Source of the DNA: Macrostomum lignano
Lineage: Eukaryota
Reading direction: 5' to 3'
Assembly: GCA_002269645.1 (NCBI GenBank)
Contig: NIVC01002646.1
Coordinates: forward strand, 62,001 to 126,000
DNA length: 64,000 nucleotides
This document shows positions 540 through 57,992 of the stretch, piece by piece. Position 1 is the stretch's first letter. Each line of letters opens with the position of its first letter. Under the pieces are notes generated by a model. That model saw nothing but the letters and a program-made list of their open reading frames with translations. It searched no databases and was not told the origin of the DNA. The translations under genes were made by a program, and so were the position numbers.

Positions 540-1099
540 CATGCAGAATAGCTCTAATAGAGGAAAATTAACTGCCGCAGTGCATTTTTCATGACACAAA
601 TCGAGCTACTCTCCAGATTTTCTTTTCCAGGTAGTTCCGTAGCTAAACTACAAAAAACAAAAAAATATCGATGTATCTTGCTGAGCTACGGTTCATGACG
701 GCATGCTGCTCAAGAAAAGAGTCAGAATCATCTTCAGGAGAAGTCTGTTGGCCCGGCGGGACAATGCAGCTTTTTGAATTCTAAGCATTACACTTTATGT
801 TATATTGAATTGCCTGGTCTGCTTTTAGCTGCTTTTTCTCGGATATCAAAGGCCAAGTCCACGCATCAAAGAATAAAAATATCACTGTTTAAAATCCTTA
901 ATATGTGCTTTACTGCTTAAGGATACATTGCAGACTCATCACATCAAAGTATTTTTGGTCTTTAATCGCGGAACAATAATTTGAATTCACGAATGAATTG
1001 CAAACGTATTGCAGAAGGTGCTAACTAGTTTTTAAGCACTTTGATCGAAGATTTTAAAAAATAGAATTCATTTAAAAACTGTCTCGTCGATCATTTCTT

Positions 1100-1432
1100 T
1101 CATAAGCTGTCCAGCATTTTCATTGCACTTTCTCGATCAATTTTTTTCAGACAACCGTAAATCAGTTGTGAAGTGCCGTCTGAAACTTTGCAACCGGACG
1201 CAATGCAATTACTCACTTCTTCCAGATTGTCACCGAATTGGAATATACAAGCTCCGTACACTGACTTGATCTCACAGGTTTCCGAAAGAACACGAGCTGT
1301 TCTCCAGCACTCAATATCCATTTCACTTTGCTCGCCAGAACCAGCTGCATCCTCGATAGCTGCGGTTGCCATGGAAACCAGGGCAAAAATAAGAACGCAA
1401 ACTTTAATAATTTTTCGGAAACTCTCAGCCAT
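1100..1432 (-). CDS. Small secreted 6-Cys protein A (110 aa), family not recognised
   Basis: ATG at 1432 downstream of acceptor-like TTGCAG (~1483). Hydrophobic leader MAESFRKIIKVCVLIFALVSMATA. Cys spacing C-x10-C-x8-C-x13-C-x4-C-x12-C. Paralogous to 3686-3967. Confidence 0.8.
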   Translation of the reverse strand: MAESFRKIIKVCVLIFALVSMATAAIEDAAGSGEQSEMDIECWRTARVLSETCEIKSVYGACIFQFGDNLEEVSNCIASGCKVSDGTSQLIYGCLKKIDRESAMKMLDSL

Positions 1433-2843
1433 GGTAATGGTTATCCAATGGGTAGCTTTCAGATGAGATATAACGTTGCCGATCTGCAACTATAAACTCA
1501 GTCAAAGCTTTAGTTGATGGTCTCTGTTTAAATAAAACTATTTTAGCAGTGGATAGTGCGTGTATGTTTCGAATATTTTTGCTAGCTTGAAATTTTTCTT
1601 TTCGTTATTCTATTCCATTTTTTCTTAAACTCGATAGAGCAAGCGGCACACAACATTTTAAAATGTTTCATTTGCTGAAGAGTAGATGTCTAAAAAAGTT
1701 TTAGAATCTAAGTAGCTTGAATATTTTATGAAAGAATTTTTAAGTAATATGCAATTGTCAGTGGAAAGAATTTTCATGAGCGCGCCTTCTGTATGGTTAA
1801 GAATTTTTAGCATTTTCAATTTTGCTAAATTGAGATTGAAAAAAAATCAATGGTATGTGAGGCGAGGCGATTCGATTCGTCTCATGTAGCAAACCAGACA
1901 CGAACGATTTCCAAATTTCCCTATTTCAAGCATCAAGTAACGGCTAATGATGCTGTTTTGTTGAAACTATAGAGTGCAAGTACTTGATAACTTGAGCACA
2001 TTGACGTCGGTGTGTTTAAATAATTTACCTTTTAGGGATTCAGTTTTTCATAACTGCAATCAATTTTGCCCGCAGAACTTCACGACTATATCCATGTCTC
2101 ATAGCTTCCTGTTACCTTCAACACATTTACCATTTACAAGAGAAACGAACGCTACAATCGAACAGCATCGTATGTAAGTACTCAAGTGAGTGGCTAAGGT
2201 CTTCATGGATGTCATCACCAAGCAGAAGTGCATTCATTCAGTGAACCATACCCAAACGTACATCCAGAGATGTCCAGGGCCTGGTCGACATCTTTGACTG
2301 AATGATACGTATCCTGAGTACTTTGTCATCGATTGCAGACTCATTTTTACCTCAGACTGGTCTGAAACGTTTTACTAAAAATCTGTGCAAGTAGACTATA
2401 GTGTCATAATTTTTATTGCTAGACTTTAGGCAGTAACACTACACTATAACTATTCTTTTATTGTGAGGATTGCCACAGAGAGTATCTGCAAGCGCGAAGT
2501 TTCTACAAGGATGATTCCTGCTGCAAAAATATCACTGTTCCAACTATGAATGCCTCTATTGATGTTGATTGATGAGTGAAATCAAAAGCGCCTTTTCTAC
2601 CTAGGAGAATAAGACTACTTTAAATTAATTAGTTATTGCATCATAGAGCTCTGCACTAGTAGTTTAGCCTACTAGATTTAACTAACTTTAACAGAATCAG
2701 AACAATAACTTTTGTTCTCTAGCGATAACGTGCTTGACTTTGTCAGATTTTGATTATTTTGCAAAAGGCATGCTTTTAACAATCTTTCTGGCCGAAGTAA
2801 CCGGACCTCATCAAAATACGCCGTAAAATATACCACTCAGCCT

Positions 2844-3066
2844 ATGTCAAGTTCTGCTCATAGTAGTTTCAAACTGTCCTTGTTAAGCAACTTCCACGAC
2901 ACCTGCCGTCAGCATCGACATTAGCTGTTCAGCTGAGTCGGGCGTCTCCTCAGTGTTCTGCATCGTGGAAAATTTTAAATCCACACGACACAGCCTGCTG
3001 TCGCTGTGCCTGGCGCAGAAGTGCGGAGGAGCGCCAGCCGTTATCGAGCGCTGCATCCACTTCTAG
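2844..3066 (+). pseudogene. Broken third member of the Cys-rich peptide family (5 Cys)
   Basis: Frame 2887-3066 reads ATSTTPAVSIDISCSAESGVSSVFCIVENFKSTRHSLLSLCLAQKCGGAPAVIERCIHF*, which aligns to peptide B. In-frame TAA at 2884-2886; ATG 2844 joins only with a 1-nt indel; third Cys missing. Absent from the ORF track. Confidence 0.6.
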
Positions 3067-3685
3067 TCTATACGAGCTACCTGTTTATTTCTGCTCTTAA
3101 GCTTAAATCTTTCTATTATAGTCATAAAGACTTATGCAACTTGAAACTTTACGCTGCAATCTTAGTATTGTTTAATTAGTTTAGTGAAAACTTAAGCTCG
3201 ACTTGAGCCCGTGCGTGCAACATTTCCACGTCTGCCGACGTACCCGACGTACCCAAGTCACTGGGAATCATTTGACAGCTGCGTGGATAGATGCCTGCTT
3301 GGCTGATTATCAGTTAAATATGAAAGATTTGGCTTTAAAAAACGTTACATCAACCTGCAGGCAAATGACTTAAACATTGGTTTATTTGCTCTTAAAAATC
3401 TAGCGATCACACTAGCGGAAAAAAATACCCAACTCGACAATGCATTTCGTAAGCTTGTTTCCTGTTCAAGATTCGAAAAAAACTACTTTTCAGCAAAGTC
3501 TTTAAGATTAGTGAGCATGGCGTTGCCAGTCAACTTCACTTGCTGCTAATGCGTTGCAAACTTGAACTTCTCACATGAGTAACATTTGTCAATCACTTAT
3601 CTTTCGAGACCGTATCAATTTGTTTTATTCAATCGTAACTAGTAAAAAATCTTGCGAAAGTCATTTGAAAAGCGCAACTGCAATA

Positions 3686-3967
3686 TCAAGGCTTTTTAAG
3701 ACAACTGACAATCAGCTCGGCCGATCCTCCGCACCTGCCAGCCAGGCAGTTCGCCACCCTGTTGTAGTCGCCGCTGGATGATGCCGCACAGCCGAACAGC
3801 GAGTTGACCACGCACACTAGAGAGTTGACGCCAGCCAGCTTCATGCAGTAGGTGTCGATGTAGATCCGCGGTGCATCGTTCTTTGGAGTCGCATCGGCAA
3901 CAGTCATCGGTCCCAGGGCTACAAGCGCTAGCAGGACTTTCAGATGGCAAAGCTTTGAAATTAACAT
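3686..3967 (-). CDS. Small secreted 6-Cys protein B (93 aa), family not recognised
   Basis: Leader MLISKLCHLKVLLALVALGPMTVADA. C-x10-C-x7-C-x13-C-x4-C-x9-C. Shares GD-x4-V-x-NC-x-A-x2-C and LI-x2-CLKK with protein A. Confidence 0.8.
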   Translation of the reverse strand: MLISKLCHLKVLLALVALGPMTVADATPKNDAPRIYIDTYCMKLAGVNSLVCVVNSLFGCAASSSGDYNRVANCLAGRCGGSAELIVSCLKKP

Positions 3968-4816
3968 CTTTGCTGACTAGAAAATCACCCGTGCCCAACT
4001 AATGGAATGAATATATATCTTAGTTCTGCAATCCAGTGCGTGGCTATATGACCAGCGCTACATTTTAAATAGTGCTGTTGACTTAACTAATCATAATTTA
4101 TAGCCTAATAGTAAACCAATTAATATCATAAATTTCTTTACATAGGAAACTAGCCACAATCTTCTCGGGTACAGGTTCCAGAAAAACCGACTTTTTTCTT
4201 TAGAGTTTGGCCCTTGTGTAAGCTTGCCTAAGCTTGTGTTGTGTAAGCCCGTATCTATACAGTAGGGAATTAATAAACCTCTCTCGAAGCATTGCCCTTT
4301 GTAGTTTAGCTTGTTAATTACCGACAATAAAATACAAAGCCATATGCCATTTTCCTTTGGTTTAGGGTACAGTCAGGCTGAGAGTTCAATTGAAAGAATG
4401 GAGTATCAGGGTACTTGACAACATAAAAAAACTATTGCACTCGGTAAATGCTACTAAATATCTTACTATGCTAGTAGTAATATGCTGTGAATATATTTGT
4501 TTTAATTCCCTTTTCATTTAAACTTCCTTATATTTTCATAAAGTCGCAGTAGGTTTCAGAAGTTTTTTTTTCTTTTTTTTCGCGAAAAGGATAGTCCTAT
4601 TTTAAAAACGCACTGAAGAGTATGATTAATTTTTTTCAAAGTACGGATTGCACTTTGAATTTATTTTCATTAAAATATTAGCATAAAGCATGCGTGTTAT
4701 AGTACGTATTTATACACGCAAATGAAATGAGATGAATAAATAATGTGAGAAAAGCATTTCCGTAAATAGAAGTTATAAATTCACTTCGGAATAACAAAAT
4801 GATTTTGCGCACGAAT

Positions 4817-6398
4817 TCAAATCAGCGCCTCTCGCTCCTGGTCTCTATCGCGCATCTCAGCGGCGGCGGCTGCAGCGGCGGCCTCTTTGATGTCCAGCTG
4901 TTGCAGAAGCATCGCGGTGGTTGGTCCGAGGTCTGCTAAATCCCGATCTAGAGAAGGACTGTCTTCAACGGCTTCTGCTAAAGATAAAATTGAAAATCGT
5001 TTAGTAAACCTCATTAGGCCATTTTTTAAACAAAACAAAATACATGTACGTTCAACATATAGGACGCAAAATCATATACGACAATTCATAACTATATTTC
5101 GTCTATTGGTATTCAGGTATTTTATGAATTTATTCCGTTTCTGGTTTACTGTGAAAAATTTAAATTAAATACCAAGTTTTTTTCCTTTTTCTATAATTTA
5201 CAAATTACAGTGTTGCTATACTGGTGCAAAAAATATCGCGTTCATAAAAGAAAACTTTATGAAAAAACAATTCATTTACTGAAAATGGTAAATGCTAAAG
5301 ACTTAAGTAGCCATCTAGCAGTATTATCAATTTGGCTCGTCTTCATTCTAAAATCTCCTTCCATTCTCACTTATTTGCACCGCCTATTCAATGCCCCTTA
5401 GAGCGCCCTCACTGAAGTTTATCCTTTCCTTAACACTTCTCTTCATCACTTTTCCTTTTCGTTTCATTCGTATTAGCAAGTGGCACTTTTTCATAGATAA
5501 TTCCCCGATGATTGCCCGAACCGAGCAGGAAGGAAATATCTCCCTAAGGCGCTGAGAGGCCTAAGGCGACTCGCCCTTACAAAGAGCCTCTCCACTAACC
5601 GCAGCCTGTCAAGCGTGCGAAGAATAAGACGCCGGATCTGGGCTGGAGATTGCGCCAGTTTCGCTGGCCAAGACATCGGTGGCCAAGATCCGAGCTTCAA
5701 ATGCTTCCATCGCAGCTAAGCCGAAAAAAAACAGCCCCAAGATGAAACAGGGGGCGAAGAAAAAGGTATTTTGATCCCCGCAAAATGCATATTTTATCCC
5801 CCTAGGACCCAGCAGTCTTCGAGACATAAGCTCCCCTGGAATAGGGCTGTTGATAACAAAAAATAATGAATCATGAAAGAAAGCTCATACTGTAATAATG
5901 TTTTTAGGCTGCTATTTTATGAAAAAATGCCGCAAAGTGGCGAAACACTTCTGTATCGTCAATTTAACAACTGCCTAAATATTTCTAACTAATTCTGCTA
6001 TAATATTACACATACCTTCACTTGCCGTTGTCGATGGCGCTGGGTTCTTCCCCGCCGCAGCTTTCGTTGTGACCGGCGTCGTGTCGAAGGTTAATTTAGT
6101 TTTATCGACTTTTGAGTTCACTGACCGTTCACTACTTTGATTATTGTCACACGCTGGCTTCTTTTCGGCCTTCCTGGCGGCCTCTCTGGCTTCTCTCTCG
6201 CATTCGCTGCAGTAGCTGTCCGAGCCGAGCAGCTAGCATCGCCCGGATTCTGATCATCGTTGTCAAAGTCACCTTCTGAGCAGCCGCCATCGACGTCACT
6301 GCCCGCCCGATTGTCAAAATCATCTTCAGACTCCGACGAAGAAGACGAACCAGCGGCCAGAGATGCGGACTCCCTGTCTTTACTGGAGCTGCTCCGGT
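4817..6398 (-). CDS. 3' exons of an unidentified gene (Ser/Asp-rich, AT-hook-like RPPGRPKR), one frameshift
   Basis: Exon 6398-6016 (TGCAG acceptor, GTATGT donor, 383 nt, one base short of keeping phase) and terminal exon 4977-4817 (TTTAG acceptor, ...AAAAEMRDRDQEREALI*). 5' exons not located. Confidence 0.4.
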
Positions 6399-7006
6399 CT
6401 GCACCAAGTTAGATAGTTGACGATCGGCACCTCCGATCGGCGTCCGTTATTGAAGGTAGGGGTACTACCCGAGCTACAGAACTCAGGGGTTTTAGTAGCA
6501 ATATAAGCCAGGAAGTCTTCACCTCTCTGGTTAATATCAGAACTGCCCCAGTGGGTATGGTGGGCGTTGATATCGCCTGCCACAAGCAGCTCATAATTTC
6601 TGGTGGAGCAGAGCTCGACCAGTGTGACAAGCTCCCCTGGGATCATCTCGCCGTCACCCGGTAGGTAAACGGAGGCGATGAGGGTAGCACTCCCACTCCC
6701 AGGGAGTATGTCTTCAGATTGGATGACGCAGATGTCCCTGGTGGACAGGTCCGATCTGAGCCATGCGTTAATAGAATTGGACACCATGATGCAGGATCTT
6801 GGTGTCATGTTTCCCTCCCGGGTGCCAGCGGTTAAACACTGGTAGCCGGTGGGGACATGTTGGGGGCTGCCCCTTAGCGTCCAAGGTTCCTGGATAAGGA
6901 TAATCCCTGGCGCGTATTGGTCAGTGTGCTTCAAGAGGTTGACCGAAGCAGCAATGCCGTGCTGCAGGTTGACCTGCAAGCAGTGGATGCCCTGGGAGAC
7001 GGTCAT
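6380..7006 (-). pseudogene. Retrotransposon APE endonuclease domain, truncated ORF2
   Basis: 208-aa ORF with exo/endo/phosphatase motifs. After PTFNNGRRSEV it runs into non-element sequence instead of the expected IDLT motif and RT. Confidence 0.85.
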
Positions 7007-8756
7007 GTCTACTGTCCAGGGGAGGAGAAAAGCAACTCATTCTCAGCCTCATCGGTGAGAGTTGAGTCGCCAATTTCCATTGGCTCAGGCAAGGACCACT
7101 AGAAGTAACTTCTAGTGGTCCTTGGGCTCAGGCCCAGCCGCCTCCCCAGCCGCCGCGGAGGCGGACACGGCGCCCACGGCAGGTGAGTCACCTAGCCGCG
7201 CTACACCGCCCTCCCCCCAGCGACTGGGGTACGGCTGCTGCCTTCGCCTTGCGCCGCCCCGCCGTCGGGAGTCTGAGCTCGGCCGGCAGCGTCCTGCTGG
7301 TGGTAATCCCACCAGTTGGAAGGCTGAACCATGCCGTCGTCCAGTTCCCTCGGCTGGCTTTCAGTGTTTTTGCGAGCAGCACGAGTCTGCTCGAGGTGAA
7401 GTCTCAGAGACTGAGCTTCGTCAAGTGCGCGCTGGATTAGCCCGGACCGCCGGTTACTGCGGGCGGGTCTACGTCCGCGCGAGGCGGACTCAGCAGCGCG
7501 AATAGCCTTGTTAGGCTCGGGATCGGGTTGCTGCTGCCGCTTGGCCGGCGGAGCCTGAGCCCCAGCTCCGGGAGCGGCGCGCTTCCCGTCGTTCTTGGTC
7601 TCCACCTTGCCCTCCTCACAGTGGAGGATGGTCAGTTGATGGAGACCAAGCTGACGTGGAGGTTTGTGCCGTGTGGTAGCCGCTTGGCCCATCCCTCCGT
7701 CAGGCCGAGGATGACGGTGGCCCCGATCGTGCCCTTGCGGACCGTGCTGTGGTACACAAGACCACTGGCGTCAAGATCCGGGTGCCGCTTGAGCAGGAGC
7801 TGCCGCAGCTGCTCCCCGGACTTGATCGCACTGTCGGCCGGGACCCAAATCCGATGGCGGATGGTCTTCGGCCGCTCGCTCTCCAGGGCGAAGGTCGACT
7901 GGCCCAGATCGCTGTGCCAGTCGAACTTGGGCAGCTGATCCCGCAGGGTCTGGGTGCTTTCCTTGAATTTGCACCACAGTAGGATGCACCCGTTCGCCTT
8001 GGTGGACTTGACGATATCCACGAAGACGCCCTTCAGGGTTAGGTTGAGCAAGCCCTCGTCGATGGTACGCCACGCGACGTCGAGCTGCTCGGGCGTCAGG
8101 TCGAAGTCCCCGCCGAGGATCATCACGGCGGGTTGCAGCGGCTGCTTGACCTTGGAGGCGTAGGACTCGGAGGTCTTGAGCGGGGCCGCCTTGTCCTTGG
8201 AGAGCGGTAGGCCGGCAGGGTTTCCCCCTGAGAGTCCGAGGACACGGCGGTTCCTGACGGCCCAGCCGCGCCACTGGACTCCCCAGAGGGCCTCCCCGCT
8301 GCGGTGGCTCCCGAAGGCCTCACCGCGGCTTGCCCGCCCTCCGCGGGCGCAGCAGCAGCCCGCTTCTTCTGCCGCTTACGGTTGCGGCGAATGTTTCGCT
8401 GCCGTCGGTACTCGGCCGTGCGCGGTCGGCTAGACTGGCGGCCAGGGTGCTCGGCGGCAGCGTTAGCTGGCCCAGTTGGACCAGGTTGGGCCTTGGTGCT
8501 ACCAGTGGTAGCTACCGGAGCGGCTGATCCCGGTGGGCCAGAGGCGACCGGGTCAGTTTCGATCGTTTGGGATGGTGGCGTTAGTGGTCATAGCTGAAAA
8601 GCGGGGAGGGCTACTCGTTACGCGAGTTGAGTACCCGACTGGCCGACACCTCAAGCCAGCCGGTTTGAAAAAGGGGACCGCTAGCGACCGGACTACTCCC
8701 GGCCTTCCAGCCCATCGGCACGGTCAAACACCTTCGGCATTAGAGGGCCTTAGGCA
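6420..8756 (-). mobile_element. 3'-truncated non-LTR retrotransposon (LOA/R1-like): 5'UTR, frameshifted ORF1, APE endonuclease of ORF2
   Basis: ORF2 start encodes APE motifs (QVNLQH, IQEPW, SVYLP, GDINAHHTHWGS, NQRGE, TPTF) and breaks off at ~6420 with no RT. ORF1 ~8591-7012 is spread over several frames and includes SYASKVK plus a DUF4780-like region. Confidence 0.85.
7090..7124. mobile_element. 35-bp perfect palindrome (17+1+17) with 8-bp TSD, inserted in LINE ORF1
   Basis: CAAGGACCACTAGAAGT-A-ACTTCTAGTGGTCCTTG between GGCTCAGG (7082-7089) and GGCTCAGG (7125-7132). Removing the insert and one TSD restores the ORF1 tail GEAAGPEP-MEIGDSTLTDEAENELL... Confidence 0.85.
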
Positions 8757-9153
8757 TTAAGCATATATTAGCTTCAAGCAGCAGCACGGCCTGCAGGCTG
8801 GCGAGCATACCCAAATTCGGCCAAAGCCACTGGATGGGTCGCCAGCGCCGGAGCCCAGTCTGTCCAGCAGCCCTAGGGTCTGCCTTGAACACACGCGGGG
8901 ACGGGTACCCCTGGGTCGACTTGTGAAACAGCGTGGGGGAGTCTGCGGCTGCCAGAAGCAAATAGAGGGTGCAGACCTCCCGCCAGCCTTGACCTGCGGA
9001 TAGGTAGGGGCAGGCGTGAAGCATCGCAGACCTTAGCTCGTAGGCCTAGCCTGCCTTTACTTCACTGGCATGCTGAATACGCCTTCGCGTGCCCTACAAT
9101 TGTCAAGTGTAAACCCCATCTGCGATTCATCAATCGGCATGCACCCGGATGAA

Positions 9154-9329
9154 CCAATCAAGATAACCAAAAATAACCCAGCTACGGTAACCAATCACGC
9201 GCGCTTACACTAGACTAGTGGCTTAACTTCTACCCTGTCATGTAGCTTGACAGCAATTAAAGCATGACCCTTTGACATTTACGAAAATGTGATGAACGAC
9301 CTCGAGAGGGGTCCGTTTGCCTATAAATA
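9154..9329 (+). promoter_or_regulatory. CCAAT-CCAAT-TATA promoter-like module
   Basis: CCAAT at 9154 and 9191, TATAAATA at 9322-9329. Motif evidence only. Confidence 0.35.
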
Positions 9330-9597
9330 CAAGTGGTCGAAAGCGGACCCAGAGCCAACAACCGAACCGCTAGGGATCCCATAGCTAGTTAATTCGAAGC
9401 TTCCGATTGGTCCGAAACACAGATAACGGCCGGCAATACTCCAAGGAGCACCAAAAAGGACCAACACCAGAGTGAGCTAGGAACCACGAGGCGCCTGAAC
9501 AACTGATCAACGAATTCACTAGAACATCCCTGACGCGCCCTGCTGATCTACATGTACTATAATATTACTGTGACCTTGCACGGGGCCGCGTAGTACT

Positions 9598-9633
<36 letters not shown>

Positions 9634-9644
9634 TTGTTGTTGTT
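9598..9644. repeat. (TTG)n microsatellite
   Basis: About 15 near-perfect units. Confidence 0.95.
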
Positions 9645-12600
9645 CAGTGTACATGTTTTATACGCGTCATATACTCTTTAAGCATATATTAGCTGACTTT
9701 TAGAGAGTTACATGTACGATCGAGTACAGTTACTTGTAAAACATGTATAGTTATGTGATTAATGTGATGTGATGTAAGGTAATGCAATACAATGTAATGT
9801 AAACCAATGATGGTATTGAAAGTGCATGTCATTTATGGAAGCTCTTCTTAAAAATTGAATGAAACTCATGAATTGTAGTTTATAGAAAAATAAAATCATC
9901 TTCGAATCATTAAAGTTTCTGGCAAAATGTCATTGATGCAAGTTAATTACGAAAGAACCAAGTTTTTCTTTATTAAAATCATCTACACCTAAGTTTGTTA
10001 AATTGTAAACTAAGATTAGACGGATTACTTTTCAGCACGCGTAAAATTTTCATTGTGTGCCTAAAAGTTCTTAAGCACACATTCTTAAGCATACATGCCC
10101 ACATTTCAAAGTAAAATTTGCTCGTAAGTTTTGCAATGAATAGTAGTAATAAAGCATGTAAGTGAAAAATAAAATGACTTTTAACGTTAAAAACGTAAGA
10201 ACTATTATAGTTGCGAAGTGTCTTTGATTTAATCGCTTAAAAGCATATTAATATTTTCAAAATCACCTGTCGAGCCGGTAGAAATATAAATTAGATCCTT
10301 GGAACGAACACAGGAAACTTTCGGCCCAACTTACTATTTTAAATAAACAGGCGCAAGAGCCAATTTTAAAACGGCTGACGCGCGGCCCGGTGAGCTGTCT
10401 GCTTGACTCTCCCGTGGCAAACTTATTAACGAACGAGGAAACTTTCGGCAACTAGCCTTACCATCAGGCATCAGCCATCGCCATGCCTAATTCCTACTAA
10501 CGTATCTACGACTGCTATACGAGTAATAATAATTCTTTTGCATTTGGGCAAATAATATAAATTGACTAGGTTCAATTGCTTTCACGCGTACTCTACATGT
10601 ACTAGACAAATCTAGTTAGATCAATCAAGCCGATGCCCGATGGCTATGGTTAGACCTATATTTGTCATTTGTGCTTTAACTTAACATTTCTTAATTAGCA
10701 TCGTTAGGTAGGACCTATGCCTATGGACGATTCGGAGCGCTGCCCAGGGCCTGAGTATAGTCTCTGTGCAGGCTAGTAGGGGCCTATTGTAATTATTTAT
10801 ATAACTGCAATTTAATAAATTATAGCTAGATAGATAGATCAATGAATAGTACTAGTATAGGCCTATTTAATCATCAGTTATCTAGTAGATATCAATCATA
10901 ATTGACAAAGAGCCAAAATATGTGGATCAATGTTGGCTTTTCTAATTCAACATAGGTCTAGGTGCAATGCATTGCCATTAGACTTGTATTTATTTTGTAG
11001 CATAACTAGGGCCTATTCTATAGTTTTGTTTGTTAAATTATTTTGACTCTAGAAAAAAAATCTACAAACTATTTTTAGCACAAAAACTAATTTTAAGAGA
11101 CTAATGATTAAACACTAATTTGAATAAATATCTATTACTAATATTAGGCTTAGTTTCATTAACACTTATTGTAATTTTCAATTTGGCCTAAAAAGCTCAA
11201 GTTTAAAAAAGATAAGACTTTTTTATGACTTTTTGTTTTTTTCTAGCCAATTGGCATGCTTTCAAGTTTTATCAGTTCATCATTTATACCATAGTTTGAA
11301 TTGTGTTGTGTATTAGTATAGGTATAGGCCCTATGGCTATGCTGGGTCTAGTAGGGGAAAAAGTATAGGACCACATTTGTATGCCAGTATTAAAAAGTTT
11401 TCAACTATGTACACTGAAGTTGTACACTTTTTTCATTTTTGAACCTATTATTCCTGCATAATTAAAAACTAGAAACTATGGACTTTTTAATGTGCAACGA
11501 GAAAATAGGCCTACAATTATAAAAGAAGTACGTTAAATATTTTTTGCTAAAAATGAAAAAAAAAATTAAATTTGTTTTTTTTTCTATGTTCCATAATGAT
11601 AGTGTTGCATATAGTCTATTCTATATAAAGTCATTTTATTTGATCCTAACATATATATAGGTATATCATAGATATAAGCCAAAATTTTCCACTGTGTCAT
11701 TAGTCATATATGCTAGGATGTAATATGTATGTTGATGTATGTTGAAAAATGGCAAGTTCCCTTGTTGCTGTATACCGGGAAATCCCAGTATACATGTTGC
11801 CTTCCAAACTATGGCATTTATAGAGTCTAGTGACTTAGTAAGATTTTAAAATGTTCAATTTTCATGTTTTTGTTGTTATTCTTAGGTAGATCTAATTTGT
11901 ACAAGTAAATAGACATCTCATTTGTAAAAATTGATTTAGAAATAAAAAAGTTATGACTATTTTATTGTGATAATTTCTTTGATTTTTATGGTATATTTTT
12001 TTTCAATAACAACTATGATTTGTTAATTTAAATATTAATTGAATAAATTAAGTAGAAAAAAGCAAGTCAAAAATGGTACAAACATTTTAAAAAGAAACAA
12101 ATAACAAAAGTAAATAAAATAGTAAGATTATGTAAAAGAAAAAGAAAAATCATATTTTTAAATATAAAAAACTTTTTAGTAAAAAACTTTTTTATTTCAA
12201 TTCTTTTGAACTGTCTTGTTCATTTTTATATTTGTTTTCTTCATTTTTAGGTGTATACTTTGTTCCCAATCCAATAGCAATATTGATATACATAATGTTA
12301 GGGGGTGCAATCTTTGTAGCCTTTTCCAGGTGAATCCAGGTAAGTTTTATAAAAAATTGCTATAGCTATTCAATGTAGAATATTATGCCAAAATTCTACA
12401 TTGATAAGTCATAGGTGGAAAGTAGTAGCACAATGTTTACTATTGAGCTTTATTGCAGCCAGTATTGAGGCTAACATTATAAAGAGAAAAGTTGTGGCAC
12501 AATCTCAATTAGAATTATTCAGTTAATAAGATTTTGACCATTTCTAGCCTCCATTAAAAGCATTGGAAAAACTCTTTCAAATATTTTACCATCTTCCCAT

Positions 12601-13628
12601 TCAAATTTTTCAATGCAATTATTTCCACATAATCCACAAGAATTTCCATTTGAATAAAGCAAGTTTTTAAAAATTGGTTTAGGCGTTCAGGCTATAGACT
12701 GAAATATTAGTCAGACAAACCTTAGACATTTAGTTTATTGTGAGTGATAATAGAAATCTCAATCAAGGAAAAAGACTTGAAAATTAATTATATATTTTTT
12801 TCACTGTTGTTTTTGGTCAAAAGGTTTATGATATCTTGATTTATAACTATGGCACACATTGAAATCTTTTTTGGAAACTTAATGATAAAACTTATAATTG
12901 TTTATAAATTTAAATTGCATTTTTATGTAAACTATGTAATTTCTACATATTTTATAAGCTATATGACATTTTAGTGACATTAATATTTCCATTATTTAAA
13001 CTTTAATTTAGGTTAATTTAAACTAAAATCAATATTCAATGAAGTAAAAATAATATTATTTAATAATTTTCAAAATAGAAATGCAAATGTTATTTTTTTT
13101 CTTAAATTTATCATATACCTAGATAGATGAAATTTTTTTAGCATATTAGATATACTTATAAATTGTGCAAAGCTGAAAGTTTGACAAAGCCAATAGACTT
13201 CTTTCTCTTACTTTTAATTTTTAGCCAAAGACCAACCTTTAACTTAAATGTCCATTTTTCAATGTCTTTTGTAGATGTGATTTAAGCCCATTGTGATCCA
13301 AATTATACATGTACATGTATAAGATTTAAATATCCAATAAGAAAATAGTTTTTTAATGTAACCATCTTCTAAACTGTATATTAGAGGTTCTGCTTCTGAT
13401 TATTTGTAAAACTTGTTTATCCACCATTTCTGCCCGTGAATCTGCTACACAACTTGGCCATCATACAAAATTGTCAACCTTTAGCTCAGGCAATTTGGAA
13501 AAAAACTTTTCCAACTGAGAAAATTGAGCTGCCAAATCACTCATTATTTTGAGTTCAATGCACTGCAGCTGAAGCTTTATTGACTTATTTTTGCTGATTC
13601 TGTGTGCCTGTTCAAACAGCCAGCTTCC

Positions 13629-18794: not shown

Positions 18795-21700
18795 GCAGTT
18801 CAACGCTGAAGTCTGTGCAGGCTGTGCTGCGTGACCATATTTTGAATACACATTCTCAAGTCCGTCAGGTCCATCTAGCTGTCTATAGAGTCTGCCAGGT
18901 CTGTGCTGGCGTATGCTGTTTCATCAGGCATGCTAATTCCATCCTTCTTCATCTCTCCCGCAGCTGCTGAACCATCAGGAGACTCTGCTAGCCCGCCTAA
19001 GCGATTCCTCAGTTGCCAAGCGGATGTCGCACAGCTCAGACACATCGTCAGCCTACTCTGGCAGCGGCGAATTGGACAGCTCCGTACAGAATTATGACAG
19101 TGATGAAGAGCTTCATCAGCAGATGCGGATGCTGGACGCTGATTCGGCTCACGGGGTTCAAGTGACGCCCGACCTGCCTAGGCGGAGTCCCCTACTAATT
19201 GCCCTAGAAAAGGACCCAACTGAAAGGTCAAATGAGGACATCGAATTATTGCTAGACTCCTTTCAACGTTTGCATGCGTTCTCAAATTTCACTCGAGCTA
19301 CTCAGAGGCAATTCGCCGGCTGCATGCTGTACGCGGTGGTTGAGAAACCTGGACAGGTTGTACTGGATGACGGAGAGAAGCTGGACTCTTGGTCCGTTAT
19401 TGTTGATGGCGAAGTGGAGATTCAACGGCCTGGCAACGCGCCCGTGCAGCTGCACTGCGGCGATGCCTTCGGAGTGAAGCCGACTACTGAGCGGCAGCAC
19501 CACGTGGGGGTCATGCGGTCGCTGGTGCCCAACTGCCGGTTCGCCTTCATCACTCAGGTTGGTTGCTGCTGGGACTGCAGCTGGTTGTTTTTAACGCGTC
19601 TCAGCTTGAGATTTCTAAGTGTCTCATCCTGAGATTTCTAAGTGTCTCACCTTGAGATTTCTAAGTGTCTCACCTTGAGATTTCTAAGTGTCTCACCTTG
19701 AGATTTCTAAGTGTCTCACCCTGAGAGGGATTTCCTAGCCAGCCTCCCAGATCTTCAGTTGCTGGGCCAGCCTCCCAGATCCTCAGTTGCTAGGCCACCA
19801 GCCTTCAGATCCTCAGTTGCTGGGCCACCAGCCTTCAGATCCTCAGTTGCTGGGCCACCAGCCTTCAGATCCTTAGTTGCTGGGCCACCAGCCTCCCAGA
19901 TCCTCAGTTGCTGGGCCAGCCTCCCAGATCCTCAGTTGCTGGGCCAGCCTCCCAGATGCTCAGTTGCTGGGCCACCAGCCTTCAGATCCTCAGTTGCTGG
20001 GCCACCAGCCTTCAGATCCTCAGTTGCTGGGCCACCAGCCTCCCGGATCCTCAGTTGCTGGGCCAGCCTCCCAGATCCCCAGTTGCTGGGCCAGCTACCC
20101 AGATCCCCATCAGTTGCTGGGCCAGCCTCCCAGATCCTCAGTTGCTGGGCCAGCCTCCCAGATCCCCATCAGTTGCTGGGCCAGCCTCCCAGATCCTCAG
20201 TTGCTGGGCCAGCCTCCCAGATCCTCAGTTGCTGGGCCAGCCTCCCAGATCCTCAGTTGCTAGGCCAGCCTCCCAGATCCTCAGTTGCTGGGCCAGCCTC
20301 CCAGATCCTCAGTTGCTGGGCCAGCCTCCCAGATCCTCAGTTGCTGGGCCAGCCTCGCAGTTCACGAGTTAATGACCCCCTCATCCACCGTACTCAGGAG
20401 CAGTACTGCAAGGTGCTCTCAGCCGAAGCGGAGAACACCATAGAGATTCGAGCCTCTGACGGCAGTCTGCAGCTGGTGAAGGAGATCCGCACGCTGGAGT
20501 CGGGTACGCTTAAAAAGCAGCAGACGATAATTCGAGGCACGCCGCAGGCGCTCATCGATCAGCTGCTGGAGTGCCGCGGTGGTTCCTCGGCCGACCCGAA
20601 CTATGCCGACGACTTCCTGTTGACTTATCGCACCTTCTTGGACAGCGGCCTGCCGGTGGCCCAGCGGCTCCTTGAAGGCCTTGGCTGCGGTGGCGAACAG
20701 GCCAGCCGTGCTGTCCGAGTGTTCCTGCTGTGGACCAACAATCATTTCAACGACTTCGACGATTCCAGCGAATTGTTTCGAATATTGCAACACTTCGACA
20801 GGCAGTTGGAACGCCGGGAGGAGACTCGAGGACCGCAGAATCTGCTCAGAATTGCCTGCTCGACAAAGTCGCGATTGAGAAAAGCGGCCTGCCCTGTGGT
20901 TAACAGTGGGGCCAGGTTTCATCTGGGCGAACGGCTGTGTTACGTTCGAGACGTGATTGACAGCAGTCCGGCTGCTCTGTGCGGTCTACGGTCCGGCGAT
21001 CGAGTCGTGTCCATTGGTGGTCAGCCTGTGGAGCAGATGCCGCTGGTGCGACTGAAGAGCCTGCTGCAGGTACGCTGTGCTTGATATGGGAGGAGGGGGG
21101 CAAATATTTGTGCACTTAGTGCCATTTTGTAAACCTAATAGTGCCATTTTTAATTAAAGGTGCCATTTTTAAACTAAGGGTGTCATTTTTAAACTATGGT
21201 TGTCATTTTTAAACTAAAAGTGCCGTTTTTAAACTATAAGTGCCATTTTAAACTATGGGTGCCGTTTTTAAACTATAAGTGCCATTTTTAAAACTATGGG
21301 TGCCATTTTTAAAACTATGGGTGCCATTTTAAAAACTATAGGTGCCATTTTTAAAACTATAGGTGCCAAACTATTGGTGGTATTTTTGAAACTATGGGTG
21401 CCATTTTCTAAACTATGGGTGCCATTTTTGAAACTATGGGTGCTATTTTTAAAACTGTAGGTGCCATTTTTTAAACTATGGGTGCCATTTTCAAAACTAT
21501 GGGCGCCATTTTAAACTAAGGGTGCCATTTTTGAAACTATGGGTGCTATTTTTAAAACTGTAGGTGCCATTTTTTAAACTATTGGTGCCATTTTCAAAAC
21601 TATGGGCGCCATTTTAAACTAAGGGTGCCATTTTTGAAACTATTGGTGCCATTTTCAAAACTATGGGCGCCATTTTAAACTAAGGGTGCCATTTTTGAAA

Positions 21701-24700
21701 CTATGGGTGCCATTTTCTAAACTATGGGTGTCATTTTCTCAACTATGGGTGTCATTTTTGAAACTATGGGTGCCATTTTTTACTATGGTAGCCATTTTTA
21801 AATTATGGGTGGGTGCCATTTTTAGACTAGGGGTGCCATTTGTAAACTATAGGTGCCATTTCCAGACTATGGGTGCCATTTCCAGACTATGGGTGCCATT
21901 TCCAGACTATGGGTGCCATTTTTTTGTTTTGATTTTACCAAACCTATCATTTGGTAATCATTATTGATAATAATCAATTGTTATTATCAATAACAATTGA
22001 TAATAAGTTTCAAATTGATAATCATTATCATCCCTCCCACCACCAGCCGTCGCATCAGCAACAGTCTGACGCTAAACTCGACTTGACAGTTCGTTGGGAT
22101 CCGCTAAATTTTTATAAACTGTTGCTGGCCTCCAATGCATCGGCCACAGCAGCTGGTGGAGGCCATCAGGACTCGGGGAATGGCGGCAGCAGCAGCAGCG
22201 GCGGCGGCTCACTCGGCAGAGCCACAGGCCGTCAGCTGGTTCCTGGCAAAGCTGGTAGCGACACCGGAGCAGCGGAGAAGGTTGCCGCCTCTGCTGCAGG
22301 TACATCTGGAGGTCACGCTCTGAAGGGATCGACCTCCAATCCAGATTTAAGCGCCGGTATTGGCAGTGTCAGTGGCGTAGCCGATCAGCCGGATCACGTG
22401 ATCCGTGTCTTCAGACCCGACGGTGCGTTTAAACTGTTGTGCATCAACCAGGAGACTACGGCTAGAGAAGTTGTGATGCTGTCTATGCAAGAGTTCGGAT
22501 TGCACGGCTCAAGCAATGAGTATAAACTCATGGAGATTAGCGTCAATGCTGGGCCGCTGATCCGGCGGAAGACCCTGTCGGATAATCTGCAAGACCTTGG
22601 CAACCGGCTAGCGTTGAACGCTCGCTACTATGTTAAACAGCAGAATGAGCTGGCGCACCAGTTCCTGTCAGATGCGGATGCTCAGGATGTGCTCAGGGAG
22701 GCTGCTGTGGACTTTTTGCAGGTGAGCTCTGCTTATTGCTTAGCTGATACCCACTTGAACATTTTGCTTGGTTAAATAATTTTGCTAAAAAATAGCTAAT
22801 TTACATAGATAGTGGCCAGTTTACATGAATATTGGCCAATTTACATGCTTAATAGCCAATGTACATAATTGGCCAATTTACATGAATATTAGCCAATTTA
22901 CATGAATATTAGCCAATTTACATGAATATTAGCTAATTTACATCAATATTTGCCAATTTACATGAATATCGGTCAGTTTACATGAATATTGGCCCATTTT
23001 CATGAATATTAGCCAATTTACATGAATATTGGCCAATCTACATGAATATTAGCCAATTTACATGAATATTAGCTAATCATAATTTAGCTACATAATCATG
23101 ACTGATAATTTACATGGATATTAGCCAATTTACATTAATAGTGACCAATTTACAAGCATATTGGCCAGTTTGCATTAATTTTGGCCAATTTGCATAGATA
23201 ATTAACGAGAAAATCAGGCAGTTTACAAAAATAGTATTAATCAAATGAATGACTCATCAATAATCATGGTTAACTTTTTATTTATTCAGAATAATAATAA
23301 AGCCTTTTATATATGTATTTGAGGTTAATACCCGTTTCCCAGACTTTTTCCTCTGGAATCATAGCGCGTAAAAGATTATATAAGATGTATAATTATTGCA
23401 CAGAATCCCTGCTAAACCCTCAGATACTTGTAACTTCTGCCCTTGGTGTCCTGACTTGCCACTGTTATAGTGCATGCAGCTGTATATCACGCACACACAC
23501 ACGCGCCTCGCACTAACTGGGTTCTAGAACTAATCCCACGACTTAAACCCCTCCTCTATCAAGTCTTTTCCATTCCCTCTTTTTCTATTGATGACTCATC
23601 TTGCTATACATCAGTGCCAGGTGCCGGAGGTCCACTCCGCCCATTTCTGATCCTAGCCCCCCCCCCCTCTAGTTCAACTCGGGATGGGACTTCTACCTAT
23701 GACTGTAGTTGTGTAAGGAAAAAATGTTTTTATCTACCTGTTTTTTGGGGTGAAAAGTGAGAGAGAGAAATGCGAAAGACTGACATATTTTTTCGTTTTG
23801 TACCTGGCACTAGATAGGTCTGCTTGAATAGTGATGTAGAGTAGGCTACTTCTACACATATTGTTTATGTTTAATAAGCAGTAATGACTGATAAAACTTA
23901 TTATTTTTTAGAAATTTTTAATGCCTACGAATTCATTATCAAAAGTCGATTCGTATGAATAACAGAGAGGGGGGAGAGAGGTAGTTAGGAGAGAGGAAGA
24001 TAGGAGATTTAGGGGAGAGGGGAGATAGGAGAGAGGAAGATAGGAGATTTAGGGGAGAGGGGAGATAGGAGAGTTAGGAGATAGGAGAGTTAGGAACGAG
24101 GAGAGATAGTTGAGTTAGGAGAGAGGAGAGAGGAGAGAGGGAGATAGGAGAGAGGAAGATAGGAGATTTAGGGGAGAGGGGAGATAGGAGAGTTAGGAGA
24201 TAGGAGAGTTAGGAACGAGGAGAGATAGTTGAGTTAGGAGAGAGGAGAGAGGGAGATAGGAGAGTTAGGAGAGGGACATAGGAGAGTTAGGAGAGAGGGA
24301 GATAGGAGAGTTAGGAGAGAGGGGAGATAGGAGAGATAGGAGATTGGAGAGATAGGAGAGAGGGGGGGGTAGAAGAGAGGAGAGATGGGATAGAGTGAGA
24401 TAGGAGAGAAGGGGATAAGAGAGAGGGAGAGAGAATAAAATAGAAGTGATTGGTTTAAAGGCAAAAAAGGAGTCGATTTCAAAACTTTGAGCAGTCTGTT
24501 CCAGTTTCCCAATTAATTTACATGCTATAGGTTGCGACAAAATCGGCTCTATACCGATATGTATCGAAACGCCTAACAAACCTTATACACCTAACAATTA
24601 ATCCCAGCTGGATCCGCAAGAGGTAGCTATGCGCATCACTACAGAAGACTTCAACGTGTTCCAACGAATCCTGCCTACCCACCTGGTGGACTGGTGGCAC

Positions 24701-27700
24701 CGGAAAGAGAAGGCCTCTAAAGAGATCAATGAGCTTTCGGCGGTCACTGAAAAAGAATCCAATTGGCCAGTTAGCGAGCTCACAGCCGAGCAGAACACCA
24801 ATCGTCGAGTCCGTTTATTGAAGCACTTTCTCAAAGTGGCACAGTACTGTCGTCAATTGAACAATCTCAATACCTTGATGAGCCTGACTCTTGGCCTAGC
24901 AAAGAGTCAGAACTCTCAGCTCAATCCTGCGTGGGAAAAATTGCCTAAGAAATATCGAGACATTTGGAAGTCTTTAGAAAAACTAACTGATATCCGGATG
25001 AATCACTCTAGCTACCGGCAGCTTTTTAAATCCGATAAATTCCAAGCTCCGGCCATACCTTACCTGCCTATACTGTGCAAAGATTTAACTGCTATTCGCG
25101 AGTGCAATGAACAGATGAAGGATGGTCTAGTAAACTTTGAGAAGCTGCGACTGCTGGCTAGAGAGGTAAGTTTGTAATCTTGTGTGTCTTTCAGTGACTT
25201 CTATGTGAAACTTCAGGGGATTGCTGTACCCTCTCTGAAACTTCAGGGGATTGCTGTACCCTCTCTGAAACTTCAGGGGATTGCTGTACCCTCTCTGAAA
25301 CTTCAGGGGATTGCTGTACCCTCTCTGAAACTTCAGGGGATTGCTGTACCCTCTCTGAAGCTTCAAGAGGTTGCTATATCCTCTCTGAAACCTCAAGACG
25401 TTGCTATACCCTCTCTGAAACTTCAGGGGGTTGTTGTTATACCCTCTCTGAAGCTTCAAGATGTTGCTATACCCTCTCTGAAACTTCAGGGGGTTGTTAT
25501 ACCCTCTCTGAAACTCAAGGGGTTGCTATACCCTCTCTGAAACTCAAGGGGTTGCTATACCCTCTCTGAAACTTCAAGAGGTTGCTATACCCTCTTTGAA
25601 ACTTCAGGGGATTGCTATACTCCCTCTGAAACTTCAGGGGGTTGCTATACCCTCTCTGAAACTTCAGGGGGTTGCTATACCCTCTTTGAAATTTCAGGGG
25701 GTTGCTATACCCTCTCTGAAACTTCAGAGGGTTGCTATACCCTCTCTGAAACTTCAGAGGGTTGCTATACCCTCTCTGAAACTTCAGTGGGTTGCTATAC
25801 CCTCTCTGAAACTTCAGGGGGTTGCTATACCCTCTCTGAAACTTCAGGGGGTTGCTATACTCTCTCTGAAACTTCAGGGGGTTGCTATACCCTCTCTGGA
25901 ACTTCAAGAGGTTGCTATACCCTCTCTGAAACTTCAGGGGGTTGCTATACCCTCTCTGAAACTTCAGGGGGTTGCTATACCCTCTCTGAAACTTCAAGAG
26001 GTTGCTATACCCTCTTTGAAACTTCAGGGGGTTGCTATACCCTCTCTGAAACTTCAGGGGGTTGCTATACCCTCTCTGAAACTTCAGGGGGTTGCTATAC
26101 CCTCTCTGAAACTTCAAGAGGTTGCTATACCCTCTCTGAAACTTCAGGGGGTTGCTATACCCTCTCTGAAACTTCAGGGGGTTGCTATACCCTCTCTGAA
26201 ACTTCAAGAGGTTGCTATACCCTCTCTGAAACTTCAGGGGGTTGCTATACCCTCTCTGAAACTTCAAGAGGTTGCTATACCCTCTTTGAAACTTCAGGGG
26301 GTTGCTATACTCCCTCTGAAACTTCAGGGGGTTGCTATACCCTCTCTGAAACTTTAAGAGGTTGCTATACCCTCTCTGAAACTTCAGGGGGTTGCTATAC
26401 CCTCTCTGAAACTTCAGGGGGTTGCTATACTCCCTCTGAAACTTCATGGGTTTGCTGTACCCTCTCTAAATCTTAAGTTGGTTGCTGTACCCTCTCTGAA
26501 TCTTCAGGAGGTTGCTATACCCTCTACAACCATTTGAAACCATATTTTTACACTTAGGTGCGCGGCTTCTGCCACTATGCGCAGGCCAGCTATGAAGGTC
26601 ACACCTGGCGGCAAGGTGGGCATCATCAGGGCTCCGCCTCAGCTTCCACGGCGGCCACTCTGCATCTTGCTGGCGCCCCAAATGCCTCCGTGCCGCCACC
26701 GCTTCGACGGGCCGGCAGCAGCTCCGCCCTGACCGTCGGCTCCGGCTCAGGGAAGCGCCGCTCCGCCGCGGTGGCCGCTCTGACCAAGAAGCTTCACGAC
26801 GAGACCATCGCCGAGAAGAAGCTGGCCGAGTACGTGTCCCGGCTCCGGCTGACATCGGCTGAATCAGACGGAGGCCCGATCTCCCAGTGTCCCGATGTGG
26901 CCTCCACTGCTGGGACTAAGTTTAACACTACTAACGATGCCCAGTTTAATAAGCTCATGTCGCTTAGCGAGGGCCGCAAGCCGGCCAAGCATCAGCACAT
27001 TCCTGCTGCTGTGCCCGCCGCTGTCGTGGCCGGCGCCGCCGCGCCTGCGGCCAGACCGCCTCTGCCGCCGCCCTATCAACAGGTCAGTTTATATCATATC
27101 TATCTCTGTCGCCCTCCCAGATCCCCAGTTGCTGGGCCAGCCTCCCAGACCCCCAGTTGCTGGGCCAGCCTCCCAGATCCTCAGTTGCTGGGCCAATAGC
27201 CTCCCAGATCCTCAGTTGCTGGGCCATCAACCTCCCAGTGTCAGTCGCTGGGCCAGCCTCCCAGATCACCAGTTGCTGGGCCAGCCTCCCAGATCCTCAG
27301 TTGCTGGGCCACCAACCTCCCAGATCCTCAGTTGCTGGGCCACCAACCTCCCAGATCCTCAGTTGCTGGCCCAGCCTTCCAGAGTGTCAGTCGCTGGGCC
27401 AGCCTCCCAGATCCTCAGTTGCTGGGCCAGCCTCCCAGATCCTCAGTCCCCAGTTGCTGGGCCAGCCTCCCAGATCCCCAGTTGCTGGGCCAGCCTCCCA
27501 AATCCTCAGTTGCTTGGACAGCCGCCCAGATCCTCAGTTGCTAGGCCAGCCTCCGGATCCTCAGTTGCTGGGCCAGCCTCTCAGATCCTCAGTTGCTGGG
27601 CCAGCCTCTCAGATCCTCAGTTGCTGGACCAGCCTCCCAGATTCTCAATCCTGACCCATGGCAAGCTTATTTCACTTTCCACAGGTGATGCAGCAACGGC

Positions 27701-30954: not shown

Positions 30955-32005
30955 AGATCCTCATCAGTTGCTGGGCCAGCCTCTCATATCCTCAGTTGCT
31001 GGGCCAGCCTCCCAGATCCTCAGTCGCTGGGCCAGCCTCTCAGATCCTCAGTTGCTGGGCCAGCCTTTCAGATCCTCAGTTGCTGGGCCAGCCTCCCAGA
31101 TCCTCATCAGTCGCTGAGCCAGCCTCCCAGATCCTCATCAGTCGCTGGGCCAGCCTCCCAGATCCTCAGTTGCTGGGCCAGCCTCCCAGATCCTCATCAG
31201 TCGCTGGGCCAGCCTCCCAGATCCTCAGTTGCTGGGCCAGCCTCCCAGATCCTCAGTTGCTAGGCCAGCCTCCCAGATCCTCAGTTGCTGGGCCAGCCTT
31301 CCAGATCCTCATCAGTCGCTGGGCCAGCCTCTCAGATCCTCAGTTGCTGGGCCAGCCTCCCACATCCTCAGTTGCTGTGTCAGCCTCCCAGATCCTCATC
31401 AGTTGCTGGGCCAGCCTCCCAGATCCTCAGTTGCTGGGCCAGCCTCTCAGATCCTCATCAGTTGCTGGGCCAGCCTCTCAGATCCTCATCAGTTGCTGGG
31501 CCAGCCTCCCAGATCCTCAGTTGCTGGGCCAGCCTTTCGATCCTCATCAGTTGCTGGGCCAGCCTCTCAGATCCTCAGTTGCTGGGCCAGCCTCCCAGAT
31601 CCTCAGTTGCTGGGCCAGCCTCCCCGATCCTCATCAGTTGCTGGGCCAGCCTCTCAGATCCTCAGTTGCTGGGCCAGCCTCCCAGGTCCTCAGTTGCTGG
31701 GCCAGCCTCCCCGATCCTCATCAGTTGCTGGGCCAGCCTCTCAGATCCTCAGTTGCTGGGCCAGCCTCCCAGATCCTCAATTGCTGGGCCAGCCTCCCAG
31801 ATCCTCAGTTGCTGGGCCAGCCTCCCAGATTCTCAGTTGCTGGGCCAGCCTCCCAGATCCTCAATTGCTGGGCCAGCCTCCCAGATCCTCAGTTGCTGGG
31901 CCAGCCTCCCAGATCCTCAGTTGCTGGGCCAGCCTCCCAGATTCTCAATTGCTGGGCCAGCCTCTCAGATCCTCAGTTGCTGGGCCAGCCAGCCTCCCAG
32001 ATTCT
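30955..32005 (+). repeat. 28-bp family X, array 3 (just after RAPGEF stop)
   Basis: Same unit, with CAT insertions. Confidence 0.95.
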
Positions 32006-33868: not shown

Positions 33869-56138
<22,270 letters not shown>

Positions 56139-56400: not shown

Positions 56401-56544
56401 TTACCAGTTTCTGTTGCTAAATTGCTTGTCATTCCAAGAAATCGCACATTCCTCTTACTACTCAGTTTTCAGTAGTTGTGTTCAATTAAAATCGGTGCAA
56501 ACTTGCGTCTTAGGTCTACCGTAGGATTCGAGTAAGAAACCCGA

Positions 56545-57675: not shown

Positions 57676-57992
57676 TTGGTCAACAACACATTCAGTATAG
57701 ACACTTTGTTCTTAACTTACAGCACCTAATTCTTGACTCTTATAGCACTTGATAGCACAAGTCCCTAAAGTACGGTCGTAAGAACAGAACTGCATATTTA
57801 CATAAGACGAACACTCTGCATACATTCATTGTAGGTATTGGCTTGGCAGGAAAGAATTAGAGTCAATAGCTGTCTGCCCCAGTCAACTCTGTACAAGTGG
57901 GTGAATATATTAGGGGACTAATCTTCAAGCCTTCTTATTACAAAATACCTGAATTATATTCTGATTTTTTATTCAAGTCAAAAGAAGAAAAA

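Follow-up and report, generated by a model that had tools for sequence, protein, structure and literature searches.

The 64-kb stretch of the Macrostomum lignano genome analysed here, referred to throughout as the window, holds at positions 1100-3967 a single small gene family in three copies and no more, termed A, B and C, whose products are predicted to be secreted proteins built around six cysteines. The favoured explanation, to which a probability of roughly 0.6 is given as a whole, is that of a small cluster of Macrostomum-restricted secreted six-cysteine genes in which B is functional and transcribed, A is an old divergent paralogue with an intact open reading frame (ORF) and no measurable constraint, and C is a dead inverted copy. 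Its core, namely that the secreted, lineage-specific family is real, that B functions and that C is a pseudogene, is taken jointly to be very likely. The sequences of B and its paralogues were already public, and uncharacterised, as "hypothetical proteins" of M. lignano in GenBank; the cysteine framework itself is apparently new and confined to Macrostomum.

A and B both lie on the minus strand, A at 1432..1100 (ATG at 1432, TGA at 1100-1102) as an intact single-exon ORF of 110 amino acids and B at 3967..3686 (ATG at 3967, stop at 3686-3688) as a single-exon coding sequence (CDS) of 93 amino acids for a predicted secreted six-cysteine protein. C is found between them on the plus strand (2827..3066), tail-to-tail with B and degenerate. 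An earlier reading of this DNA, made from the sequence only, had proposed that two ORFs here share a scaffold, two motifs and signal-like leaders, and all three were recovered. Behind their hydrophobic N-terminal leaders the mature regions have six cysteines in the scaffold C-x10-C-x7/8-C-x13-C-x4-C-x9/12-C, with a spacing of 10/8/13/4/12 in A and 10/7/13/4/9 in B, and the motifs GD..V.NC.A..C and LI..CLKK are common to both. The two proteins are 37% identical over 60 amino acids (pairwise BLASTP, E = 4e-9); tblastn of the whole window with A as the query gave E = 1.9e-5, and with B as the query C was matched at E = 4.5e-7. A family hidden Markov model (HMM) was also built from paralogues at other genomic loci only, with A, B and C left out, and was run on 3152 six-frame segments taken from the window and from eight further loci (L001-L008). 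Because this paralogue-only model picked out all three copies (B at E = 2.4e-19, C at E = 3.4e-9 and A at E = 2.5e-7), with the next-best window segment at E = 0.08, their resemblance is beyond chance. By profile match and spacing together, A and B belong to the Macrostomum six-cysteine family with the full spacing, and C belongs to it without its third cysteine. Neither tblastn nor the HMM, in six frames, found further family copies in the 64 kb. Weak matches at 30.9 kb were considered as extra copies and rejected as minisatellite ORFs, and a TTG at 1489 was set aside as a start for A, since it only opens the longest mechanical ORF.

It is B that carries the case for a working gene. Five GenBank "hypothetical proteins", all from assembly GCA_002269645.1, match its protein exactly or at 97-99% identity (BOX15_Mlig026862 g1, g2, g4 and g5, and Mlig019425g1; cluster members include PAA48749 and PAA57546). 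The annotation that GenBank gives for that assembly rests entirely on a genome-guided RNA-seq transcriptome (PMC5730564), and B, together with the family genes Mlig029556, Mlig018888, Mlig001791 and Mlig013012, is therefore transcribed. The window and L001-L005 make up six homeologous or allelic copies of the locus, and across them the CDS of B shows no indels and a divergence of 0.7-2.1%, against 2-19% and tens to hundreds of gap positions in the 700-bp flanks. The pooled ratio of nonsynonymous to synonymous differences (pN/pS) among these recent homeologous copies is 0.20, and the GC content at third codon positions (GC3) is 0.65, with flanks at a GC of 0.37-0.39. Purifying selection thus acts on B among recent copies, and B is a functional, transcribed gene. 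Its predicted signal peptide (MLISKLCHLKVLLALVALGPMTVADA; 3890..3967, minus strand) was delimited heuristically by a hydrophobic core, LKVLLALVAL, with a mean Kyte-Doolittle (KD) value of 2.71 and by small residues at -3/-1, with likely cleavage between ADA and TP; the mature protein is mildly basic, with an isoelectric point (pI) of 8.6 and a net charge of +2. Pattern searches on the same strand located an AATAAA hexamer at 3624..3629, 57 nt past the stop, which may serve in polyadenylation, and a TATATAT at 4011..4017, 50 nt upstream of the ATG, a putative TATA-like element.

The third copy that had been claimed between A and B on the opposite strand is indeed there, but it is dead. A premature in-frame TAA at 2884..2886 (plus strand) disrupts the frame within the leader, no methionine occurs between the upstream TAA (2824-2826) and the terminal TAG (3064-3066), and the segment bearing the third cysteine and the GD motif is gone. 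In L001 the homeologue of C shares both the in-frame stop and the gap relative to B, and in the four remaining homeologous loci the region of C is deleted. C is accordingly a pseudogene; its ancestral start codon could not be located, the DNA alignment of A, B and C being too divergent.

The status of A is less secure, and of the two ORFs that had been called intact, both frames are open but only B bears signs of expression or constraint. A is the most divergent member of the family, acidic (pI 4.4, net charge -7) and with a C-terminal extension of 13 residues. Its predicted signal peptide (MAESFRKIIKVCVLIFALVSMATA; 1361..1432, minus strand) has, by the same heuristic, three K/R in the n-region, a core VCVLIFALVS with a mean KD of 3.10, small residues at -3/-1 and likely cleavage between ATA and AI; a weak variant hexamer, ATTAAA, found by pattern search 134 nt past the stop (961..966, minus strand), could act as a polyadenylation signal. 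A is present and intact in L001 and L003, at 94.5% identity, and absent from L002, L004 and L005. It stands at even odds that only B matters here, with A a relic that does not function but has so far escaped a disabling mutation and the "cluster" reduced to one gene and two decaying copies. What speaks for this, and against the favoured explanation, is that A is missing from the RNA-seq-derived GenBank annotation at all three loci that carry it, that its GC3 of 0.39 equals the background and shows no codon bias, that its CDS divergence (2.4%) is not below that of the flanks (1.2-2.2%), that its dN/dS is 0.83 (on eight changes, seven of them within codons 1-44) and that it is absent in three of the six homeologous copies. 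On the other hand, the ORF is intact and free of indels in three copies when each alignment of the 700-bp flanks has 2-44 gap columns, all six cysteines and the family motifs are kept at about 35% identity to other members, and codons 45-109 have zero substitutions where about four would be expected at 2% (a Poisson estimate, P about 0.02). A is thus an old divergent paralogue, intact and without measurable constraint, that may be weakly expressed or on the way to being lost, and the chance that it functions is put a little below even. Its sole database record is as one exon within the UniRef model A0A1I8FVG9 (P0006, 3935 amino acids), which was rejected as a genuine A-containing protein, being a chimeric model that joins retrotransposon ORFs to pieces of B and A.

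The wider family was sought with a profile of A and B run by HMMER, exhaustively, against 1.84e9 representative proteins. It matched P0007 (Mlig029556; E = 1.4e-7) and P0008 (Mlig018888; E = 1.7e-6), both with the same cysteine framework, and iteration added three clusters, Mlig001791, Mlig013012 and P0013. This search, of the kind that the sequence-only reading had called for, matched only M. lignano entries among the representative proteins, and word-seeded searches of 5.8e9 clusters returned M. lignano entries only, apart from P0013. The latter comes from two Logan assemblies, of runs SRR31628394 and SRR31628425, and has a GC3 of 0.92. In comparison with the M. lignano loci retrieved, only its CDS aligns, at about 80%, and the flanks do not. 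Its source is either another Macrostomum species or a locus that went unassembled. The contigs on which P0013 lies in these runs (L006 and L007) are short and genomic, and one end of L006 looks tRNA-like by eye, as a candidate.

Throughout the family the six cysteines are invariant, with a spacing of 10/7(8)/13/4/9(12), and the coding regions are single-exon, which bears out the description of these genes as intronless; M. lignano genes contain about 4.9 introns on average (PMC5730564). Both Mlig029556 and Mlig018888 occur singly, next to unrelated genes. On contig NIVC01000671.1 (L008) a tandem array at 1511-13411 holds at least five family genes and one truncated copy within 15 kb, and in its members a further N-terminal helix segment (AYTPEQKNEVVNDIIHEVVPV) separates the signal peptide from the cysteine domain. 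The GC3 of the tandem-cluster genes, 0.84-0.92, suggests strong codon bias.

Within the array, the paralogues P11 and P12 (of the Mlig001791 and Mlig013012 types) are nearly invariant over the signal peptide and N-helix, with a ratio of nonsynonymous to synonymous rates (omega) of 0.3-0.9 at a synonymous divergence (dS) of 0.04-0.08, whereas about 40% of the residues of the cysteine domain differ, with all cysteines kept, an omega of 0.9-1.3 and a dS of 0.19-0.29. A conserved leader followed by a fast mature domain is therefore the pattern in the tandem paralogues. Birth-and-death evolution, as had been proposed, is visible because C is dead, A and C are patchy among the homeologues (in three and two of the six, respectively) and a tandem array exists elsewhere. 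The proposal that the family evolves fast held for the cysteine domains of the tandem paralogues but not for B, which is under the purifying selection described above. Taken together, the data support a fast-evolving, birth-and-death family of presumably secreted proteins.

For A and B, AlphaFold2 models were made and, as the sequence-only reading had expected, came out helical. The model of A (mean predicted local distance difference test score, pLDDT, 72.5) has helices at 16-21, 31-42, 46-56 and 63-73 and a C-terminal extension at 76-84; that of B (mean pLDDT 81.7) has helices at 13-18, 24-38, 42-53 and 57-63 and a two-residue bridge that links the conserved ID and LK ends. A four-helix core, with four to five helices in all, is thus predicted. 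That the family is unrecognised was upheld by the Pfam, PDB-sequence and Foldseek comparisons. Pfam hmmscan of seven members (A, B, P0007, P0008, P0011, P0012 and P0013) at E <= 10 gave sub-threshold noise only, with no match to ShKT, CHH/ITP, Kunitz, insect odorant-binding protein, insulin-like or other Pfam cysteine-rich domains; the family profile against all PDB sequences reached a best E of 0.47; and Foldseek against 350,542 PDB chains gave a best E of 1.5 for A and 5.8 for B, with template-modelling (TM) scores of at most 0.41. The framework of the cysteine-stabilised alpha-beta (CSab) defensins and macins is likewise absent, as the mature regions have no CxxxC or CxC and no Pfam match, and the models, essentially all-helical with the two-residue terminal bridge as the sole beta element, are unlike the beta-sheet of those proteins. 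From sequence and predicted structure, then, no link between the six-cysteine family and any known family was detectable.

Saposins deserve separate treatment, as one member carries their name. P0012 (Mlig013012g1) is labelled "Saposin B-type domain-containing protein" in UniRef and is the sole member so labelled. Saposins, whose disulfides join cysteines 1-6, 2-5 and 3-4, have a close cysteine pair near each end (C-x2-3-C ... C ... C ... C-x5-C), a pairing at the ends that is not found in the six-cysteine family, where the mature spacing given above applies to all members. Neither SapB_1 nor SapB_2 was matched by the seven members at E <= 10, no saposin occurred among the PDB profile matches, and the Foldseek matches listed, for A the top 50 out of 94 and for B the full 14, included none either, though these come from models of a small domain built on shallow alignments; the PDB is expected to contain many saposin-fold structures, a general expectation and not a count. 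P0012 alone starts with MCKLVC, a C-x3-C inside the signal peptide, which may have mimicked the first saposin cysteine pair. The label was set aside as a probable false positive, there being no Pfam saposin match and the mature spacing being a misfit.

As to how the proteins might work, the family would encode secreted proteins of about 7-9 kDa whose precursors enter the endoplasmic reticulum by a cleavable N-terminal signal peptide, as the heuristic suggests. The mature core of about 55 residues would form four short helices, and on oxidation the six invariant cysteines would hold this helical core compact with three disulfides; in the model, the conserved (I/V)D-x-x-C start and SC(L/I)K end lie side by side as a tiny beta-bridge. 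Lineage restriction, a mature domain that diverges rapidly, high copy number and the strong codon bias seen in the array point to an abundant gland product that meets something fast-changing or external. With low confidence, the product may be an effector that glands release to act outside cells, where its hydrophobic helices, stabilised by disulfides, would bind lipid, a membrane or a partner molecule, and which would serve defence or digestion, or reproduction. The family itself would evolve by tandem duplication, by rapid mature-domain change behind a conserved leader and by gene loss. The leading guess, held tentatively, is a membrane- or lipid-active effector of a defence type, or a digestive one, that would act in the manner of the saposin-like proteins while not belonging to them. 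Similarly tentative is the idea that the family represents a fold not described before, a four-helix mini-protein locked by disulfides, which originated in Macrostomum or the macrostomorph flatworms and serves as a diversifying effector, defence- or toxin-like or for mating, with a conserved leader and pro-helix and a hypervariable mature domain.

Beyond the doubts over A, several points weigh against this explanation of the family. The models were built on alignments of only eight to nine family sequences, and Foldseek lacks sensitivity when a domain has only about 55 residues. Leaders were judged secretory solely by a heuristic, by which all members have a hydrophobic 10-mer (mean KD 2.5-3.2) in the first 20 residues and AxA-type sites. 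The omega of the cysteine domain is about 1 and not significantly above it (binomial P = 0.45); this outcome of the dN/dS comparison across paralogues, which had been suggested as a check, could reflect relaxed constraint. Gene conversion may account for the reduced dS of the 5' half. Members are not uniformly cationic in net charge (-7 in A, +2 in B and -1 to -3 in the others), in contrast to classical antimicrobial peptides, which are cationic; the mature members are mostly acidic to neutral, with A at pI 4.4 and B, mildly basic, at pI 8.6, and most are hydrophobic for soluble proteins (grand average of hydropathy, GRAVY, +0.2 to +0.5), A being the exception at -0.1. On the site and level of expression, the family gene identifiers are absent from the supplements of the M. 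lignano papers searched, full-text literature searches for six identifiers gave no paper, and keyword literature searches gave nothing relevant.

The other roles that come into question are a reproductive secretion, a signalling ligand and a structural secretion. That sexual selection or conflict drives the evolution of these proteins as reproductive secretions, such as seminal-fluid proteins of the prostate gland, is rather unlikely, though the members are small, secreted by prediction, lineage-restricted and rapidly diverging. Reproduction-related genes of Macrostomum evolve fast (PMC7336406) and M. lignano has been screened for putative seminal-fluid proteins (PMC5977470), but the family identifiers and peptide strings are absent from the supplements searched for these two papers, an absence that counts for little as other transcript identifiers may have been used there.

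Less probable still are diffusible signals, either water-borne pheromones or hormone-like ligands, that act through a receptor. Helical three-disulfide mini-proteins act as pheromones in Aplysia (attractin) and in Euplotes, and charge and surface vary strongly between members of the six-cysteine family; against this, its cysteine frameworks are unlike those of the attractin and Euplotes families, and genes so numerous and so strongly biased in codon use suggest bulk secretory products over signals. Finally, a diverged branch of the saposin-like proteins (SAPLIPs: amoebapores, NK-lysin and caenopores), acting by lipid binding or pore formation, would account for the name given to P0012 and for members that are small, secreted, predicted helical, six-cysteine, hydrophobic and multi-copy, but it is highly improbable in view of the misfitting end pairs, the missing Pfam, PDB-profile and listed Foldseek matches, none of the latter better than E 1.5, and a label unique to the one member whose signal peptide would mimic the first pair.

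Orphan secreted mini-proteins rich in cysteine are a very common class, and the six-cysteine family falls within it. Secreted cysteine-rich proteins of narrow taxonomic range often underlie lineage-specific defence, adhesion, mating conflict or venom. The assets of the six-cysteine family are a clean cysteine framework, the lack of a known fold match, a tandem array and gene birth and death that can be seen directly. As M. lignano is a transgenic model that is amenable to RNA interference, so compact an orphan family, of about 55 residues, is directly testable. If the fold is new, it would be an extra scaffold for the disulfide-rich mini-protein repertoire; otherwise the family merely joins the many uncharacterised orphan families that any invertebrate genome contains.

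Just upstream of B, in a GC-richer patch of the window, a 73-amino-acid ORF at 4817-5038 (minus strand), which contains a run of alanines and has an acidic tail (…DIKEAAAAAAAAEMRDRDQEREALI), has no Pfam match and may be an exon of a neighbouring gene. At 6380-9400 (minus strand) lies a fragmented non-LTR (long terminal repeat) retrotransposon, whose ORF at 6380-7006 has an endonuclease domain (Exo_endo_phos_2, E = 3.9e-11); overlapping GC-rich retrotransposon ORFs run to about 8274, and it is such ORFs that A0A1I8FVG9 joins to parts of B and A. About 18.3-27 kb on the plus strand is occupied by a multi-exon gene of the PDZ-GEF, or RapGEF2/6, type, with minisatellite-filled introns and domain matches to cNMP-binding (19024-19632, weak), RasGEF_N and PDZ (20380-21084), RA (21951-22775) and RasGEF (24629-25177, E = 3.7e-41). 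A 28-bp minisatellite (TCAGTTGCTGGGCCAGCCTCCCAGATCC) occurs in four dispersed arrays in both orientations, at 19738-20360, 27113-27647 and 30964-31990 on the plus strand and at 63454-64000 on the minus strand; it yields long spurious ORFs (LLGQPPRSSVAGPASQILSCWASLPDPQ...) and may be carried by a mobile element. The tandem-repeat load of 14-64 kb is extraordinary, with more than 35 distinct arrays at a Tandem Repeats Finder (TRF) score of at least 400 and periods of 4-209 bp, such as 25206-26525 (period 30), 45155-46800 (period 26) and 56544-57676 (period 21), and with related 38-bp units at 36569-36887 and again at 39793-40679. Nearly all window ORFs of at least 130 amino acids are repeat artefacts, and Rfam identified no RNA families in the window.

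Among known systems, the SAPLIPs (SapB_1/SapB_2, PROSITE PS50015) resemble the six-cysteine family in being small, secreted and all-helical (here by prediction), with six cysteines and three presumed disulfides, and in being hydrophobic, mildly acidic and multigene; one six-cysteine member was even automatically labelled as one of them. The six-cysteine core, however, has about 55 residues where saposins have about 75-80, its cysteines are spaced 10/7/13/4/9 where saposins have paired end cysteines, and no Pfam, PDB-sequence or listed Foldseek match joins the two, so that the family may work like a SAPLIP while membership is not supported. Attractin of Aplysia and the Er pheromones of Euplotes are alike in size class, three-disulfide helical bundle, secretion and rapid divergence, and differ in cysteine spacings and lengths, with no detectable homology. 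The putative prostate-limited seminal-fluid transcripts of M. lignano (PMC5977470) come from the same organism and are candidate secreted products of a lineage-restricted kind, and in the supplements searched the family identifiers and peptide strings do not occur. With the conotoxins and the amphibian skin antimicrobial peptides there is no relation of sequence or framework, the omega of the cluster is not significantly above 1, and 5' gene conversion is another possible source of the pattern. Those superfamilies combine a conserved prepro-region with a hypervariable disulfide-rich mature peptide, and the tandem cluster recalls them in its near-identical leader and N-helix (omega about 0.3) ahead of a cysteine domain with an omega of about 1, in the retention of all cysteines, in tandem duplication and in pseudogenes.

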